Made by a program: the position numbers and the translations under genes. A model generated the notes under the pieces. It made no database searches. It was not told the origin of the DNA and saw only the letters and a program-made list of their open reading frames with translations. From the sequence record LC727695.1: a stretch of DNA of 64,000 nt. One strand, given 5' to 3'. Shown one piece after another: positions 1,816 to 57,527 of the stretch. Each line of letters begins with the position of its first letter. The first letter of the stretch is position 1.

Positions 1816-3981
1816 TTATTTGATAAGCTTAAGTAGAACAGCATTATCAACAAGAGCGCCACGAATAACTTGTAGATAAGATCCATCAGCAGTGATAATG
1901 TACATTTTGTGGGTACGTGCATCATCTGAATCTTTAGAGCTATTTAGACGCTTTGCCATTCCCATGATTACTTGAGTAATCTTAGGTTCAGTAAGTTTAC
2001 TGATAAGCACTGCTTTCTCGGTATAAATATTTAGGCAGGATAGTTCCTCAAGGCGCCAGCCAGTTTGGAAACGCACTGATAGATCTAGAATAGAATTACC
2101 TTCTTCTGGATCAATATTAACACACATACTCCGTCCAACAATAAACGGAATACTAGCGGTAAATTTATCAGCTACTGACTTACCCTTCTTACCGACCAGA
2201 TATGCGATAAGGTCACCGATATCTTCACAGAAGTCATCAATGGTTACCTTCTGACTCATTGAATCAGCCAGGAACTCATTAACTGCACTGGTGAGCCTTT
2301 CAACTAGGAACCGATAGTAGCGTTGAGCCAGCTTACCATCTAGCATTAGTTGCTTAAGGCGCTTTGCAATTAGATGCGGATCGGGTTCTTTTCGAATATC
2401 CTCGATCTCATACATGACTTCAGTTGAAGCATCAAATGGATGGGATGATGCTGCGCGATACTCATGTGCTGGAACTACATCATCTTCGCTTAGCTCAAGT
2501 GCTTCACGAACTGCATTGAGTGCACCAGCTTCTGCTTCAAGATTATTTGCACAAGCAATATAACCTTCTAGGATAACTGGATCATGTTCACGATTATCAG
2601 TTAACCCAGCATCATTTGGTGAAAACTCTTCGGCTACTTCTTTAACCGGTTTGGCATCACCCATAATGGTAGATAGCTTATAACTGGTTGCAGTACGCGC
2701 ACCACCACCACGATGTGCTTGACGACGGAGATCATCTTGAAGCTCATGCTTTAGATAATCCATTTCCATGTGATTCTCCCACTTACGATATACTTCATGT
2801 ACAGTGTTATCAGGCCATTTAGCAAGGAAGCGACAATATACTGCCGGATCCATTAGGATGCTGTATGGATTAGCTGAACTAGCAGTACGTACCCAATCAG
2901 GTTTATCTGCAACTAGATGAGCAGGTCGGATTTCAATGCCACCTGGATTATAGATAACATCCATCGGACGATCTTTATTAATTACAAATCCATTGGGTAC
3001 ATAATAGTTCGGATCGAATACGAGTTCTTTCACATCTTGAGGGATGGGTAGATCCGTATTATCATTAGTTACAGTATTTGCATTTTGTTGTAGTTCAGGT
3101 AGAATCATTACATCACCTCCACCAGGGATTGTATCATAACTACTATTTGGAGATACTTCAACAGTGGCACCCCAAGAGTCTTTAGGTTGCATGACTGGTT
3201 TGTTTTCCAGGAAAGGAGAAGAACCAGGTACGTCATATGCAGCATTTGCAATTGATGGACCAGTGTCATGATTAGTTGTTGGTGTATATGCCCCTGGAAT
3301 GTTCAGCTGCGGATTAGCCATGGTAGCCGGTTGACCATAGGTCTGTTGGATACCTGCGTTAATTGGAGGTAGTTGTGAACTCATGCCAGGACGACCCATT
3401 GCTGCACCCATTCCAGGGAAACTTCCAGGCTGTACACCAGGTTGTTGATATCCACCCTGCATCATGGTGTTACCACCCATACGCATCTTTTGGATATCTG
3501 ATTCAATCTGCCCGATTACACCAAGTGCCTGTTGGATATTCGGCATTAGATGTTGAACTAGACTTTGTAGCTGCGGGAAGGTTTGAGCACATTTACCAAC
3601 AAAACCAGACCATACTAGAGATGCAGCTTGCTGCATTGCCTGCTGTGGGTTATTCACCATTTGACGATGAATAAATAGAAACTCTAGAAAGTCAATAACT
3701 TTCTGAGCCCACTGCTGATAATAGTTATTCTGAAAACCATTACTAGATAGCAGATTATACGCAAATGCATGAAGCTGGGTGGTAGTAGCAGCATTTTGAG
3801 CATTCAGCCGGAACAGCCCAATTACACCATTGAAATATGGTTGTAGTTGAGGATGTTGTTGATGTGGTGATAACTGTAGCGGTAGGCTAAACAGATAATT
3901 CCCATTAGGTAGGTTAGGATCGAAAGTACTGGTATCTACACTCTCAAAATCGACAGGTAGATTGTACTGTGCATAGTTCAT
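1816..3981 (-). CDS. Conserved phiKZ-like protein with a Q/G/P/M-rich low-complexity linker (gp124-like)
   Basis: 721 aa ORF located downstream of the nvRNAP subunit gene. Confidence 0.75.
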   Translation of the reverse strand: MNYAQYNLPVDFESVDTSTFDPNLPNGNYLFSLPLQLSPHQQHPQLQPYFNGVIGLFRLNAQNAATTTQLHAFAYNLLSSNGFQNNYYQQWAQKVIDFLEFLFIHRQMVNNPQQAMQQAASLVWSGFVGKCAQTFPQLQSLVQHLMPNIQQALGVIGQIESDIQKMRMGGNTMMQGGYQQPGVQPGSFPGMGAAMGRPGMSSQLPPINAGIQQTYGQPATMANPQLNIPGAYTPTTNHDTGPSIANAAYDVPGSSPFLENKPVMQPKDSWGATVEVSPNSSYDTIPGGGDVMILPELQQNANTVTNDNTDLPIPQDVKELVFDPNYYVPNGFVINKDRPMDVIYNPGGIEIRPAHLVADKPDWVRTASSANPYSILMDPAVYCRFLAKWPDNTVHEVYRKWENHMEMDYLKHELQDDLRRQAHRGGGARTATSYKLSTIMGDAKPVKEVAEEFSPNDAGLTDNREHDPVILEGYIACANNLEAEAGALNAVREALELSEDDVVPAHEYRAASSHPFDASTEVMYEIEDIRKEPDPHLIAKRLKQLMLDGKLAQRYYRFLVERLTSAVNEFLADSMSQKVTIDDFCEDIGDLIAYLVGKKGKSVADKFTASIPFIVGRSMCVNIDPEEGNSILDLSVRFQTGWRLEELSCLNIYTEKAVLISKLTEPKITQVIMGMAKRLNSSKDSDDARTHKMYIITADGSYLQVIRGALVDNAVLLKLIK

Positions 3982-10334: not shown

Positions 10335-11882
10335 ATGTCAAGTCCAAAACAATTACTCGTTTCATGTATCACTCTATTATGTTTAGAAAATCGAGAAGAT
10401 TCTCCAGTGGAACCATCCAATGAATTGGTTACTGAGATTCTTGATACTCTAAATGATAAGGGTGGTACATTAGATGTAGATCATGGTCGACAAACATTTT
10501 TAGATCTTCGTAATCTACTAGTGGATCTAAATAAGAAACAGAAAGCATATTTCCCAGCTACCCAACAGGTATTACAATCACTACAAGTATGTTGTCGTGA
10601 AGAAAGTTATCTATACGATGCTGTTAAAAATGCAGTAGAAGAAGAATTTCCAAATGGCATGGCATTAGCCATGCGTGTAACTTCATATCGTCGTGATCTA
10701 AATAGCTACTTAGCTGATGAGAAGGTAAAAGCTATTGTAAAAGAATGTTCATCAAAAATTCTTTTCAATAGAGGCTCTGCTGATATTCCGGCAATCATTA
10801 ATGAAATGGCAACCAGAGCTGACCCATATATTCGCGCGCGTGCTGAAGAGAAACACCCAGCTGAAATGGGTGCACTTGATTTTGGTAATTTAGATTCTAT
10901 TGAAGGCTTCTTTGAGGAAGCTAAAACTATTCTTTCCCCAAATGGTGCTTTCCGTACTGGATGGAAAGGTTTTAACAGGATGCTTGGTGATCTGGGTGCA
11001 TTAAAACGTGGTGAATTTATTATCGGTGGTGGCCTACAACATCAATATAAATCTGGCGTTTCTATGAGTCTATTTTGCCATGTGTGTCTATTTAATAAAC
11101 CATACATGCGTGATATCAATAAGAAACCATTAGTAATGTTTATTACTCTTGAGAATGAGATTCCGGATAACCTTATTTTCATTTATGAGTATATTTACGA
11201 AAATGAAACAGGTATCAAGGTAGATCGTAGTTCTATTAGTAAAGCTGAAGCAGCTGAATATGTATCAGCTCGTCTCCGTGAAAATGGTTTTGAACCAGTA
11301 ATGTATCGTTTTGACCCAACTGAATTTACGATTGCTGGTTTAGTTAACTACCTAGATACATATCAAGCACGTGGTTATGAACTACAATATCTCTGCGTAG
11401 ATTATCTAAACATGTTGCCTAAAACTGGATTAGTGACCAGTGTAGCAGGTGATGACGTTCGTCTCCTATTTAGGCGAATGCGTAACTATACTGCACCACG
11501 TGGTATCACATTCTTTAGTCCGCATCAGTTAAGTTCTCAGGCATTAGAACTAATCAGGGATAATATCCCACCAGAAGACTTTGTTAAACAAGTTGCTAAC
11601 AAAGGTTACTATGACGGTTGTCGCCGACTTGGACAAGAACCTGATCTGGAATTCTTCTTCCACATTGTTAAAGTAAGTGGTAAGTATTATCTAACCGTAC
11701 AACGTGGTAAACACCGTAACGTTGTAAGTGATAGTAAGCATCACTATTTTGTTATGCCGTTTGATCCAGACCGTATTGGTGGTATTAGATGGGATATCGA
11801 TAAAGAAGAAAACAATTACATGGACTTTGTACCAAGTCTTAGCAATATGCAAGCCACTGGTGGAGATGACTGGGGATATTAA
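10335..11882 (+). CDS. dnaB: DnaB-like replicative helicase (gp118-like)
   Basis: RTGWKGFNRMLG, GEFIIGG...YKS (variant Walker A), FITLEN, CVDYL (Walker B), PHQLS and RGKHR motifs of the DnaB/SF4 family. Confidence 0.9.
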   Translation: MSSPKQLLVSCITLLCLENREDSPVEPSNELVTEILDTLNDKGGTLDVDHGRQTFLDLRNLLVDLNKKQKAYFPATQQVLQSLQVCCREESYLYDAVKNAVEEEFPNGMALAMRVTSYRRDLNSYLADEKVKAIVKECSSKILFNRGSADIPAIINEMATRADPYIRARAEEKHPAEMGALDFGNLDSIEGFFEEAKTILSPNGAFRTGWKGFNRMLGDLGALKRGEFIIGGGLQHQYKSGVSMSLFCHVCLFNKPYMRDINKKPLVMFITLENEIPDNLIFIYEYIYENETGIKVDRSSISKAEAAEYVSARLRENGFEPVMYRFDPTEFTIAGLVNYLDTYQARGYELQYLCVDYLNMLPKTGLVTSVAGDDVRLLFRRMRNYTAPRGITFFSPHQLSSQALELIRDNIPPEDFVKQVANKGYYDGCRRLGQEPDLEFFFHIVKVSGKYYLTVQRGKHRNVVSDSKHHYFVMPFDPDRIGGIRWDIDKEENNYMDFVPSLSNMQATGGDDWGY

Positions 11883-11891
11883 CAACATAAA

Positions 11892-11911
11892 GCTCTCCCT
11901 TCGGGGAGAGC
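11892..11911 (+). terminator. Terminator after dnaB
   Basis: GCTCTCCC-TTCG-GGGAGAGC. Confidence 0.85.
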
Positions 11912-11936
11912 ACTATAATTTTAATAGGTAATCTAA

Positions 11937-12305
11937 ATGAGTGCAATTGATAATTTAGTAAATACTTTAAGAAAAAATATTAGTGAATGTAGAAAGTTTA
12001 ATCGCCCTCTATTTGCACGTGTATATGCCGCATCACAAAATTACGATAAAATCCGTTATGCTGTAGCAGAAGAAGCCCATTATTTTAAATATGGGAAATA
12101 TGCAGAGGGTAATAATTTAAACATTGATGAACTCATCAGTGATCTTTATTTATATTACACTATTTACGTTGATATTATCCGTAAACCATTACCCGATCCT
12201 AATGGGGATTTTATCAGTATCGTAAACCAAGATCACTATACACACATCTACTGGGATTTAGATCGGTGTGAATCTATTCCAGATGATGTAAAGGAGTTAA
12301 TGTAA
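11937..12305 (+). CDS. Hypothetical protein
   Basis: 122 aa ORF with an AGGT RBS. Confidence 0.7.
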   Translation: MSAIDNLVNTLRKNISECRKFNRPLFARVYAASQNYDKIRYAVAEEAHYFKYGKYAEGNNLNIDELISDLYLYYTIYVDIIRKPLPDPNGDFISIVNQDHYTHIYWDLDRCESIPDDVKELM

Positions 12306-12306
12306 T

Positions 12307-12543
12307 ATGTACTATGGTAATGTTTATATTATCTTTATTGGTGGTTTATTAATATTTATCCTAGGATTGGTATTTGGAGGAATACTGGGAGAAGAGAACA
12401 ATAACGTATATAAACTCAAATCCCAACAATTTGAATACTGCGTTAAAAATAAACAATCAAAAAATAATGACAGTGAAAATATCCAAGTTATTAAAGTATG
12501 CGCAGAGTCTATTGTACTCCTATATCCAACTAATGAAAAATAA
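12307..12543 (+). CDS. Small membrane protein
   Basis: 78 aa, N-terminal hydrophobic helix (YIIFIGGLLIFILGLVFGGIL), two Cys in the soluble part, AAGGAG RBS. Confidence 0.7.
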   Translation: MYYGNVYIIFIGGLLIFILGLVFGGILGEENNNVYKLKSQQFEYCVKNKQSKNNDSENIQVIKVCAESIVLLYPTNEK

Positions 12544-12551
12544 AGCATTTT

Positions 12552-12569
12552 AGCCCTCTTAGGAGGGCT
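12552..12569. terminator. Terminator at the end of the dnaB transcription unit
   Basis: AGCCCTC-ttag-GAGGGCT followed by TTTATG. Confidence 0.8.
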
Positions 12570-12649
12570 TTTATGTCGTATGGCTAATATGCTAGTGAAT
12601 AATGAATAAAATCGATTATAGAGCAAATTAGAAGGTATTAAAGGCATAA

Positions 12650-13130
12650 AGAAAGTCTATCTCTAGACTTATTATTTTTAATTAAAAAAATATAATCTAT
12701 ACTGTGTCTCCTTTTAGGGAGACAGTATGTTTTAGCTAACGCTATTAGAATAATGCTAATATTATTTATTATTAGAATAAGGATATACCTTCGGTATAGT
12801 TTATTATGAAATAAAAGCCCCTACGGGGCGATCCGATTCCTCAGTTCCACATTAGGTAATATTCATGAGTAATATTTAATTACCAGTATCATTGAGTAAT
12901 ACTGGTAATAATATACTAGATTATTAACAATATGTATTGATCATTCTGATTAAGTCAAATTAGCTAATAAACAAATCAATTATCAACGAGTGATAACTGG
13001 TATTGATTACTAGCTAAAGAGATTAATTAGGATATCTACATGAGGAGTCGCTACCCCATGTATTCTGGAGTTTCTCTTTAGCGGGAGACTTAACTCCACT
13101 TGGGAGCCGCTTTAGCGGGCGGCTCTCACT
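12650..13130. other. ORF-free array of about nine inverted repeats (possible origin or structured RNA)
   Basis: Stems at ~12653-12670, 12699-12728, 12784-12798, 12817-12829, 12879-12909, 12961-13016, 13037-13062, 13066-13098 and 13104-13125. Confidence 0.7.
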
Positions 13131-13156
13131 TAAACAAAAAAAAGAATTCAGATAAG

Positions 13157-13178
13157 TCCCTCTCCTTTAGGAGAGGGG
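13157..13178 (-). terminator. Terminator ending the minus-strand accessory block
   Basis: TCCCTCTCC-ttta-GGAGAGGGG. Confidence 0.8.
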
Positions 13179-13185
13179 TTGTTTA

Positions 13186-13491
13186 TCATAGGCTTCTCCT
13201 TTCGGTTACATAGAACTTCTTCTGATCCATGTCAGTGTATGTTACTATGAAATTGTCGAAGGGGTTGATGGATACGGCTAAACCTGCGTTGTTGACGTAT
13301 CCTATTGTAGGGCCAGCCCAATAACCAATGAAGTTACCTCTACGATCTCGACATTGGATAACATTATCGGCTTGCGTTTTCGCAACCGACATGCTATGGG
13401 TTGATCCATCGGGTCTCTTGAAAAAGAAACCTACTTCCTGCATTCTGTGCAGGTCAGGGCTAACATTGTTAGCGGTAACTGGAATTAACAT
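13186..13491 (-). CDS. Hypothetical protein
   Basis: 101 aa ORF with a GAGGA RBS. Confidence 0.75.
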   Translation of the reverse strand: MLIPVTANNVSPDLHRMQEVGFFFKRPDGSTHSMSVAKTQADNVIQCRDRRGNFIGYWAGPTIGYVNNAGLAVSINPFDNFIVTYTDMDQKKFYVTERRSL

Positions 13492-13621
13492 GATTGTTCC
13501 TCTTGTTAATCCAAGCCCACTTGGGCGAAAATGTTGAGTATTTTTTACTCAACGGCATATAGCCCTACTGTTACAGCAGTAGGGCTAATTCTTTTATTCT
13601 TAAAAGTTTAACTGAATAAAT

Positions 13622-13643
13622 GCCCTCTCCCGAAGGAGAGGGC
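13622..13643 (-). terminator. Intrinsic terminator with UUCG loop
   Basis: GCCCTCTCC-TTCG-GGAGAGGGC on the minus strand. Confidence 0.85.
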
Positions 13644-13656
13644 TTATGTCGTTAAT

Positions 13657-13932
13657 TTATTTAACCAGCGATGTTTCCCTAACACGAGAGATGCATAAAT
13701 AATTACTGTAATCGCTGGGGTCGTACTCATCATACCCTAGACAACTTGTATGAATATATTCAGTACTGATATTAATCATATCAAGAGTAATACCATCACC
13801 CCATTTCTTAGTTGCCATCTCGATAATATCGGCGATAGTATTGGCTACATAACAATCACCCAAGATATAAAAGGTATCTTCGGTATCATCCGGACGAAAA
13901 TGACGAATACCATTCTGTGTATATTCACCCAT
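13657..13932 (-). CDS. Hypothetical protein
   Basis: 91 aa ORF with a GAGGA RBS. Confidence 0.75.
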   Translation of the reverse strand: MGEYTQNGIRHFRPDDTEDTFYILGDCYVANTIADIIEMATKKWGDGITLDMINISTEYIHTSCLGYDEYDPSDYSNYLCISRVRETSLVK

Positions 13933-13933
13933 G

Positions 13934-14077
13934 TTAATTATCCTCTTTTCCTTCTTGAGTATGATGAGTGGGCTCTACCCAGTAAAAATCAATAAACAGA
14001 TCAACTGGTTTACAGCCAACCATCTCGCTGTCATCGGCCCATTTACTTTCATCTACGATAATTTCTTCATTAGTCAT
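13934..14077 (-). CDS. Small acidic protein, 47 aa (absent from the ORF track)
   Basis: MTNEEIIVDESKWADDSEMVGCKPVDLFIDFYWVEPTHHTQEGKEDN*, with an AAGGAG RBS. It fills the gap in the operon exactly. Confidence 0.7.
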   Translation of the reverse strand: MTNEEIIVDESKWADDSEMVGCKPVDLFIDFYWVEPTHHTQEGKEDN

Positions 14078-19727: not shown

Positions 19728-19785
19728 TTTATTTCCACCTATTTACATTAAGTTGTATGATAATGTTTACAGTATTGTCACAAAT

Positions 19786-19802
19786 GTAATATACTGTTTA
19801 AA
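19786..19802 (-). promoter_or_regulatory. phiKZ-type early promoter
   Basis: Minus strand TTTAAacagTATATTAC. Confidence 0.8.
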
Positions 19803-20946: not shown

Positions 20947-20973
20947 GTATATACTCCACATTAGTTCATATGT

Positions 20974-20990
20974 GTAATATACTGTTTAAG
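20974..20990 (-). promoter_or_regulatory. phiKZ-type early promoter overlapping the upstream stop codon
   Basis: Minus strand CTTAAacagTATATTAC. Confidence 0.75.
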
Positions 20991-57481: not shown

Positions 57482-57510
57482 TGTAAATACCCTATAGTTT
57501 TATCACATTT

Positions 57511-57527
57511 GTGATATACTGTTTAAA
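57511..57527 (-). promoter_or_regulatory. phiKZ-type early promoter (variant)
   Basis: Minus strand TTTAAacagTATATCAC. Confidence 0.75.

Follow-up and report, generated by a model that had tools for sequence, protein, structure and literature searches.

The locus considered here raises the question of what a long, hairpin-rich stretch between genes does next to the operon of a DnaB-like helicase. The gap lies at positions 12570 to 13156 of a 64,000-nt piece of DNA from sequence record LC727695.1, called the window in what follows. Judged by its sequence, the DNA is a Phikzvirus genome, that of a phiKZ-type Pseudomonas phage: over the 1.8 kb around the gap, identity is 100% to the Pseudomonas phages PA02, Brmt and KEN49 and 98.8% to phiKZ. 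A preliminary description of the window preferred a function at the DNA level (replication origin, helicase loading or packaging) and offered as a fallback that the gap encodes a small RNA (sRNA). The fallback is correct for the right third of the gap, which encodes a detected non-coding RNA (ncRNA), and the preferred function found no support in tests of skew, repeats, synteny and record starts. With a probability of about 0.8, the gap is explained as an ncRNA gene that lies beside a selectively constrained spacer of terminator-like hairpins.

A published RNA in the right third of the gap

The right third of the gap (about 12939 to 13130-13143, plus strand) is the published phiKZ ncRNA 5'UTR_p40 (UTR, untranslated region). 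Two phiKZ ncRNA candidates were found by Grad-seq, and a fragment of about 180 nt, the initial 180 nt of the p40 5'UTR, was verified on a Northern blot, where a longer, mRNA-like species of about 880 nt was also seen; the ncRNA is abundant and sediments with RNA polymerase (RNAP) and 30S fractions (Gerovac 2021, PMC8545117). The same species was detected by ONT-cappable-seq with a predicted length of 196 nt, among 17 phiKZ "5'UTR-derived" RNAs ascribed to premature termination (Putzeys 2024, PMC10914365).

The published RNA can be placed in the window by means of the Northern probe JVO-18831 (Gerovac 2021 Table S2). The reverse complement of the probe matches 12973-13001 with a single difference at 12998, which is G in phiKZ and T in this strain, a known strain polymorphism. 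Because the probe is antisense to this segment, the RNA is made from the plus strand and includes the long stem of the gap (S1), inside which the probe maps. PHIKZ_p40 (117.2) follows directly downstream of it on the same strand. Given that the long stem and both hairpins that carry the repeated 10-mer CTTTAGCGGG fall within the published RNA, no new kind of system is opened here, and the main feature is already known, having been detected by two laboratories in phiKZ. New here are the approximate window coordinates of its ends, its division into four stems, the pair of terminator-like hairpins and the finding that it is missing from Pawinskivirus, Psa21 and Noxifer.

Ends, putative promoter and read-through of the RNA

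Contigs of public RNA runs, from phiKZ-type infections with strains other than this exact one, were placed on 12300-13700. In a 2018 Illumina run taken at 10 min, a contig covers 12939-13658 and depth is absent from 12582-12910. In a Nanopore RNA run, contig depth, which is a rough guide and a poor measure of RNA level, is zero over 12629-12910, rises to 12 thousand in 12911-12957 and is highest, at 36-40 thousand, in 12958-13051. The next three bins have 29, 13 (13099-13145) and 5 thousand, and from there to about 13520 the depth is 3-8 thousand. The Nanopore contigs have poly(A) loose ends at 13143, and contigs of the upstream-operon RNA end at 12556-12588. A single RNA run from 2024 gave a contig across the entire gap.

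A discrete RNA of about 180-196 nt and a rarer longer form are both seen in the contig start, the drop in depth and the loose ends. The 5' end is near 12939 and the main 3' end is just after the fourth hairpin (12939 + 196 = 13134); these approximate ends agree with the papers. Read-through is, roughly, on the order of a tenth or more. A raw-read run of RNA immunoprecipitation sequencing (RIP-seq), X24, held no phage reads on the stretch, so that for strand and exact ends the evidence is that of the published Northern blot and cappable-seq.

An A-rich run followed by TACT lies 22-24 nt ahead of the 5' end, the geometry that has been described for phiKZ middle promoters (Wicke 2020, Yakunina 2015), and a late-type TATG lies closer to the start. 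The putative ncRNA promoter may belong to the former class. A strong promoter family with the core AACAGTATAT(T/C)AC has no member in the gap on either strand, the best score with a position weight matrix (PWM) being 2.6 as against more than 30 for the family. A TATACT on the plus strand was considered as a member and rejected, given that it is the core in reverse complement, part of promoters on the opposite strand. Sites of this family are promoter-like, about 40 nt long, with a T-rich stretch before the core, and at least 12 high-scoring ones are present in the nearest genome. Those in the window are on the minus strand at 19785-19801, 20973-20989 and 57510-57526, and at least two of the three sites viewed lie just downstream of a consensus terminator. 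The family is probably the phiKZ early promoter class.

In the proposed mechanism, a phage promoter just to the right of an 11-bp palindrome would start an RNA about 196 nt long, nearly all of which folds into four hairpins. Most transcripts would stop after the fourth hairpin, with the third and fourth (S3 and S4) acting as tandem weak terminators of the phiKZ type, such that the short form would be a leader-derived RNA made by premature termination. A minority would pass the stronger terminator T5 (13155-13180) and enter the region of p40 and p39, continuing up to the plus-strand terminator at 13560-13587. To the left of the RNA, the terminator-like hairpins of the spacer (12575-12933) face both ways and would most likely insulate three units from mutual read-through.

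Fold and conservation of the RNA

The fold of 12934-13190 on the plus strand has a z score of -7.2. The preliminary description had placed a long interrupted stem at 12961-13016; the place holds, and the real hairpin is longer, spanning 12939-13036 (about 98 nt). It had also noticed that two adjacent stems carry an identical 10-mer, and two exact copies of CTTTAGCGGG are indeed present at 13076-13085 and 13110-13119. With one mismatch allowed, the 10-mer has 3 matches in the 64 kb as against 1.7 expected; the pair is thus not beyond chance by count, and its significance comes from its position at the tips of two adjacent hairpins. The tip common to S3 and S4 is CUU[UAGC]GGG, with C-G, U.G and U.G pairs around a UAGC loop. 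Such U.G pairs can form only in plus-strand RNA, which makes S4 5.8 kcal/mol weaker on the minus strand (-19.8 as against -14.0). The repeated unit extends beyond the 10-mer, in that S3 and S4 are each followed by CTTAA, one base off the TTAT core of the phiKZ terminator consensus. It is this nearness to the core that suggests a reading of the two hairpins as weak terminators in tandem.

The 3' flank of S1 (13013-13022) is a perfect 10-nt complement of the 5' arm and tip of S3 (13073-13082), and the shorter GCTAAAG also complements the second copy of the 10-mer. Such an alternative pairing of the S1 flank with the S3 tip, if formed, would open the terminator-like hairpins, which would possibly suit a conditional terminator.

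Among 15 Phikzvirus genomes the RNA is almost invariant, and the changes that do occur fall in bulges, in the internal loop and in the S2-S3 linker. A C/U polymorphism at 12964 keeps its pairing with G, as C-G or U.G, only on the plus strand. A covariance model of the ncRNA found no match in the whole genomes of PS119XW (Pawinskivirus), Psa21 and Noxifer, and only the self-hit in PA7.

The gap as a whole

The preliminary description called this the largest non-coding gap of the window, which is borne out. The longest stretch without an open reading frame (ORF) of at least 60 aa is 12648-13185 (538 nt), the runner-up measures 322 nt, and 12648-13009 holds no ORF of even 20 aa. Folding of 12545-13185 (641 nt) gave z scores of -10.4 on the plus strand and -7.8 on the minus strand relative to dinucleotide shuffles. 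The gap is as rich in hairpins as had been claimed, with about 12 local hairpins in place of about nine stems, and the perfect 11-bp arms are where they had been reported (12879-12889 and 12899-12909). An Rfam covariance search of 12000-13800 with E up to 10 gave best E values of 0.08-0.23, far under gathering scores; ARAGORN found no transfer RNA or transfer-messenger RNA; and BLAST of the gap against the nearest whole genome found no second copy of anything except the terminator hairpin.

Other parts of the earlier picture have to be redrawn. The statement that neither flanking operon reads into the gap is half right, in that an internal promoter, as proposed above, would drive plus-strand transcription rightward out of it. 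The right edge had been described as closed by a terminator, but the hairpin at 13155-13180 scores as a plus-strand terminator with TTAT-type tails on either strand; it is therefore more than the end of the minus-strand operon, and the gap is not simply sealed off on both sides. Two mini-hairpins had been read on the minus strand as DNA-type triloops, C-GAA-G at 12784-12798 and C-GTA-G at 12817-12829. The former reads c-UUCG-g on the plus strand, the tetraloop of this genome's RNA terminators, and the latter is a minus-strand terminator in which the stem is followed by TTTTATTT. Since each reads, on one of the two strands, as an ordinary RNA terminator hairpin, the argument from GNA triloops fails. 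Hairpin promoters of the N4 type, in single-stranded DNA, have a stem of 5-7 bp and a loop of 3 nt and serve an N4-like single-subunit virion RNA polymerase; phiKZ has two multisubunit RNA polymerases.

A constrained spacer of terminator-like hairpins

The left two thirds of the gap (12575-12933) gave no RNA in the 10-min Illumina and Nanopore runs. They are nonetheless conserved: nucleotide diversity across the 15 genomes is 0.012, and the three genes that flank the gap have 0.035, 0.036 and 0.107 at their third codon positions but 0-0.02 at the first two. The spacer has therefore evolved 3-9 times slower than the third codon positions of its neighbours. Its segment 12604-12699 has no substitution at all in the 15 genomes, only changes in homopolymer length.

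The spacer is also the densest cluster of its kind. A crude genome-wide count of hairpins followed by TTAT found 9 such modules in a 400-nt window over the spacer, the maximum in the 266.7-kb genome, in which most other 400-nt windows hold 0-1. A consensus scan of 11800-14000 found 12 terminator-like sites as against 1.1 expected, and TTAT lies within a few bases of the spacer stems, often on both strands. The tail of terminator T1, at the end of the helicase operon, is TTTATGTCGT, a full match to the phiKZ terminator consensus YTTATKYYGT (Putzeys 2024, PMC10914365). Hairpins similar to T5 are found elsewhere in the genome. The spacer may act as an insulator, a two-way stack of terminators that separates the helicase operon, the ncRNA unit and minus-strand transcription. 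This role stands at roughly even odds, because the AT-rich composition inflates terminator counts and several of the counted stems are weak AT hairpins.

The loops of some of these hairpins are inverted between closely related strains. In 11 of the 15 genomes, the palindrome with the 11-bp arms carries its 9-nt loop (12890-12898) as the exact reverse complement while its arms are invariant, the loop of terminator 13560-13587 (13571-13576) also flips with another distribution among strains, and the loop of T5 (13167-13168) has the variants TTTA and TAAA as well as TGAA and TTCA. The same stems with reverse-complemented loops indicate that the inverted repeats recombine or template-switch as DNA, and the differing distributions at three hairpins indicate that the flips are recurrent. 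They occur also in ordinary terminators and are not special to the gap.

Within the spacer, an island of 57 nt stands out. It is the sole match of the gap outside Phikzvirus, with 89.5% identity to eight Pawinskivirus genomes, and it is syntenic, being located in PS119XW in a 417-nt gap that follows the homologues of dnaB and 117.4. The coding DNA around it is 66-77% identical between the genera. The island is the only short high-identity syntenic match between them; other short matches are consensus terminator hairpins that match many scattered places. It consists, in order, of an AU-rich stretch, the cUUCGg hairpin (hairpin C), two face-to-face tails and the first bases of a minus-strand terminator. 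One compensatory pair flanks the stem of hairpin C (T:A in the window, A:T in PS119XW), and the stem of the minus-strand terminator differs in sequence between the genera; at this site, that of hairpin D, PS119XW has a different GC hairpin with the same tail. Two convergent terminators explain the core of the island but not its better-than-capsid conservation, and the island could be the 3' module of a small RNA missed by the libraries, or a DNA site. Scans with the exact pattern of the island core gave no matches in IMG/VR and 6 in JGI metagenomes. The 6 were rejected as true relatives, given that their flanks are unrelated and that they are chance matches or analogous terminators.

A second short syntenic match to PS119XW, at 13515-13595 (74% over 81 nt), spans the two-way terminator 13560-13587 and the hairpin-rich leader of a 101-aa minus-strand ORF. 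The Pawinskivirus gap is itself structured on the plus strand (z -4.5 in PS119XW), and its first element is a long, imperfect hairpin of about 85 nt (3298-3380). This hairpin is unrelated in sequence to S1, and may be a different structured RNA in the same slot.

Alternative explanations

Several observations weigh against an ncRNA gene beside a spacer of terminators. The species of about 880 nt reported by Gerovac is not matched by a transcript from 12939 to about 13600-13660 (about 650-720 nt). The 3' end after the fourth hairpin has no U tract, and may be made by processing, with trimming back to S4, rather than by termination; the poly(A) ends at 13143 could stem from internal priming on an encoded A8 run. 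Contig depth, as noted, is a poor gauge of RNA level. The 2024 contig that crosses the whole gap may reflect late transcription or read-through of the spacer, or else carried-over phage DNA. Overall fold energies give little preference for the plus strand (z -7.2 as against -7.6 on the minus strand), and preference by hairpin is mixed, with S3, S4 and B favouring plus and S2 and E favouring minus. None of the 91 pairs shows a compensatory change among the 15 near-identical genomes, because the genus is too uniform, and the fold has thermodynamic and experimental support but none from covariation. In the spacer, the inflated terminator counts tell in the same direction, and a pure terminator role leaves the conservation of the island, above that of the capsid gene, unexplained.

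The last point leads to an alternative for the left part, which would hold one or more further small RNA genes missed by the available libraries. The candidates are a plus-strand RNA of about 80 nt with the island as its 3' module (AU-rich stretch, cUUCGg hairpin and U-rich tail) and a short minus-strand RNA that ends at hairpin D. The identity of the island (89%, as against 66-77% for coding DNA) is as expected for an sRNA seed plus terminator, and the compensatory pair in its hairpin, a TATG at 12726-12729 with one at a comparable place in PS119XW, and AGAATAA(G/T)G twice upstream of the hairpin in both genera point the same way. In addition, reads below about 80 nt were missed (Putzeys 2024, PMC10914365), and there is the one RNA run with a contig over the whole gap. 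Such genes are nevertheless unlikely, given the zero depth over 12629-12910 in the 10-min Illumina and Nanopore runs and the lack of a strong early-type promoter on either strand of the gap, as scored above; TATG by itself is known to be insufficient as a promoter. A doubtful proposal, drawn from the sequence pattern, concerns the 11-bp palindrome, extended to 20 bp, which might serve a dimeric DNA-binding protein as the operator through which it controls the ncRNA promoter. It has perfect arms, a 9-bp spacer and a centre about 45 nt upstream of the 5' end, the invariance of its arms beside a spacer flipped in 11 of 15 genomes suggests that only the arms matter, and a gene for a helix-turn-helix protein, PHIKZ114, is 2 kb away. 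Yet the arm sequence has no second copy in the genome, the palindrome has no counterpart in Pawinskivirus, and a plain hairpin or a quirk of mutation would look the same. An operator would be compatible with the ncRNA gene and its spacer.

As a replication origin, one of the functions at the DNA level that were first preferred, the gap would be of the transcript-primed kind, in which an R-loop in AT-rich DNA primes synthesis and loads the DnaB-like helicase; the promoter at about 12905-12938 and its highly structured, AT-rich-then-GC-rich transcript would form this R-loop, and the spacer and the island would be DNA recognition elements. The gap does adjoin the helicase operon and contain an AT-rich palindrome, the putative promoter is followed by the 28% GC segment S1, the untranscribed DNA is under strong constraint, and a 2026 jumbo-phage review, which notes only that phiKZ expresses non-coding RNAs, has no passage on replication origin or initiation. 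This origin is very improbable all the same. Cumulative GC and AT skew runs straight through the locus: in PA7 (266.7 kb, the nearest complete genome, in the same orientation) there is no inflection at 191.8 kb, where the gap lies, and the extremes are at 14-42 kb and at the record end, a weak test in that skew in this phage mostly follows gene orientation. Iterons and repeated boxes are lacking in the gap, its sole direct repeat being the 10-mer in the RNA hairpins. After the dnaB operon, Psa21 has a syntenic junction of only 54 nt and Noxifer one of 51 nt, and a sizeable non-coding element next to dnaB is thus no general trait of the family; the 417-nt gap of Pawinskivirus has only 57 nt in common, and the ncRNA model finds nothing in PS119XW, Psa21 or Noxifer. 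The RNA, moreover, is abundant and free, and it co-sediments with RNAP and 30S fractions. A signal for packaging (pac) or for genome anchoring has next to nothing to recommend it beyond conserved, structured non-coding DNA: none of 47 deposited genome records starts within 4 kb of the gap, the starts being scattered, and the element is absent from the syntenic relatives Psa21 and Noxifer. Transposon and antisense-oligomer screens of phiKZ are silent on this locus.

Neighbouring genes and coordinates

The gap separates PHIKZ117.3, the last gene of the helicase operon (dnaB-117.4-117.3), from PHIKZ_p40. Window 12000-13800 corresponds to phiKZ 115857-114057 at 98.8% identity, and a window position x converts to phiKZ position 127857 - x on the opposite strand. 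On the right, a long minus-strand operon (PHIKZ116 downwards) stops at its own terminator, 13643-13622. In SL2, OMKO1 and T2P, 196 bp (12322-12517) that make up most of gene 117.3 are missing and the whole non-coding gap is kept; gene 117.3 is therefore dispensable, and the gap is retained.

Annotations of the region conflict. Some deposited genomes (KEN49, AttikonH10) carry a 107-aa ORF antisense to 117.3 (12324-12647, minus strand) and a 29-aa ORF inside the ncRNA (13010-13099, minus strand), both of which look like gene-caller artefacts. Over 13186-13537, RefSeq phiKZ has p40 and p39 on the plus strand, whereas most other records call a minus-strand ORF of 101 aa (13186-13491) with GAGGA as its ribosome-binding site and with an intact frame in each of the 15 genomes. 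Both p40 and p39 are without a recognisable ribosome-binding site, p39 has stop codons in some strains, and the two ORFs are themselves doubtful. Searches by tblastn with the 101-aa ORF and with p39 found relatives only within Phikzvirus, to which p40 is also confined. If the 101-aa ORF is a real gene, then the read-through transcript of the ncRNA is antisense to it. Coordinates of the features are collected in Table 1.

Table 1. Features in and around the gap, in window coordinates
Feature	Position	Strand	Remarks
DnaB-like helicase	10335-11882	+	RefSeq phiKZ annotation
PHIKZ117.4	11937-12305	+	RefSeq phiKZ annotation
PHIKZ117.3	12307-12543	+	RefSeq phiKZ annotation
T1, terminator of dnaB-117.4-117.3 operon	12552-12577	+	7-bp GC stem, TTAG loop, tail TTTATGTCGT
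Hairpin A	12653-12670		7-bp stem, TTAT-type tails on both strands
AT-rich imperfect palindrome	12664-12699		A and T runs of variable length
Hairpin B	12699-12728		12 pairs; -14.6 (+) vs -11.7 (-) kcal/mol; TTAT tail on minus strand
57-nt island	12765-12821		includes hairpin C (cUUCGg, 12784-12798) and face-to-face TTAT tails; invariant in 15 Phikzvirus genomes
Hairpin D	12817-12829	-	terminator; 5-bp GC stem, GTA loop, then TTTTATTT
Extended palindrome	12870-12918		11-bp perfect arms, 9-nt loop; centre ~45 nt upstream of ncRNA 5' end
Putative ncRNA promoter region	12905-12938	+	by motif match: A-rich run with TACT 12914-12917; TATG 12931-12934
ncRNA 5'UTR_p40	12939-13134	+	~180-196 nt, four stems; probe, contigs, folds, near-invariance
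S1	12939-13036	+	39 pairs, 28% GC, ~98 nt
S2	13037-13062	+	predicted fold
S3	13066-13098	+	predicted fold; CTTTAGCGGG at tip
S4	13101-13130	+	12 pairs, -19.8 kcal/mol; CTTTAGCGGG at tip
A7/A8 run	13136-13143	+	single-stranded linker; poly(A) loose ends here
T5 terminator	13155-13180		9-11-bp GC stem, TTAT-type tails on both strands, strain-variable loop
PHIKZ_p40/117.2	13229-13324	+	RefSeq phiKZ annotation
PHIKZ_p39/117.1	13328-13537	+	RefSeq phiKZ annotation

Comparison with known systems

Transcript-primed origins such as T4 oriF and oriG, the T7 primary origin and ColE1 RNA II resemble the locus in that a promoter, here a putative one, is followed by AT-rich DNA near replication genes. They differ from it in that the gap has no skew signal and no syntenic conservation in sister genera, and in that its RNA is free and stable. 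The hairpins themselves are closer to the phiKZ family of intrinsic terminators, in which a stem is followed by YTTATKYYGT. T1 is a full match to this family, whereas T5 and hairpins A, C and D have only the TTAT core, 0-4 nt from the stem; the stems of A and C are weak and AT-rich or non-consensus, and these two are putative terminators.

The RNA resembles the 5'UTR-derived ncRNAs of virulent Pseudomonas phages, for which a short abundant RNA and a rarer long read-through form share one 5' end, and the end of the short form is set by a hairpin upstream of the first ORF. The terminal hairpin here differs from those in lacking both a consensus TTAT tail and a U tract, and the ORFs downstream are doubtful. 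The published phiKZ 5'UTR_p40 has the same locus, strand and size and the same sequence, which is 97.6-100% identical throughout the genus; its published reading is premature termination ahead of p40. Nothing essential differs, and the window holds a strain variant of that RNA, for which the paper drew two stems and four are drawn here.

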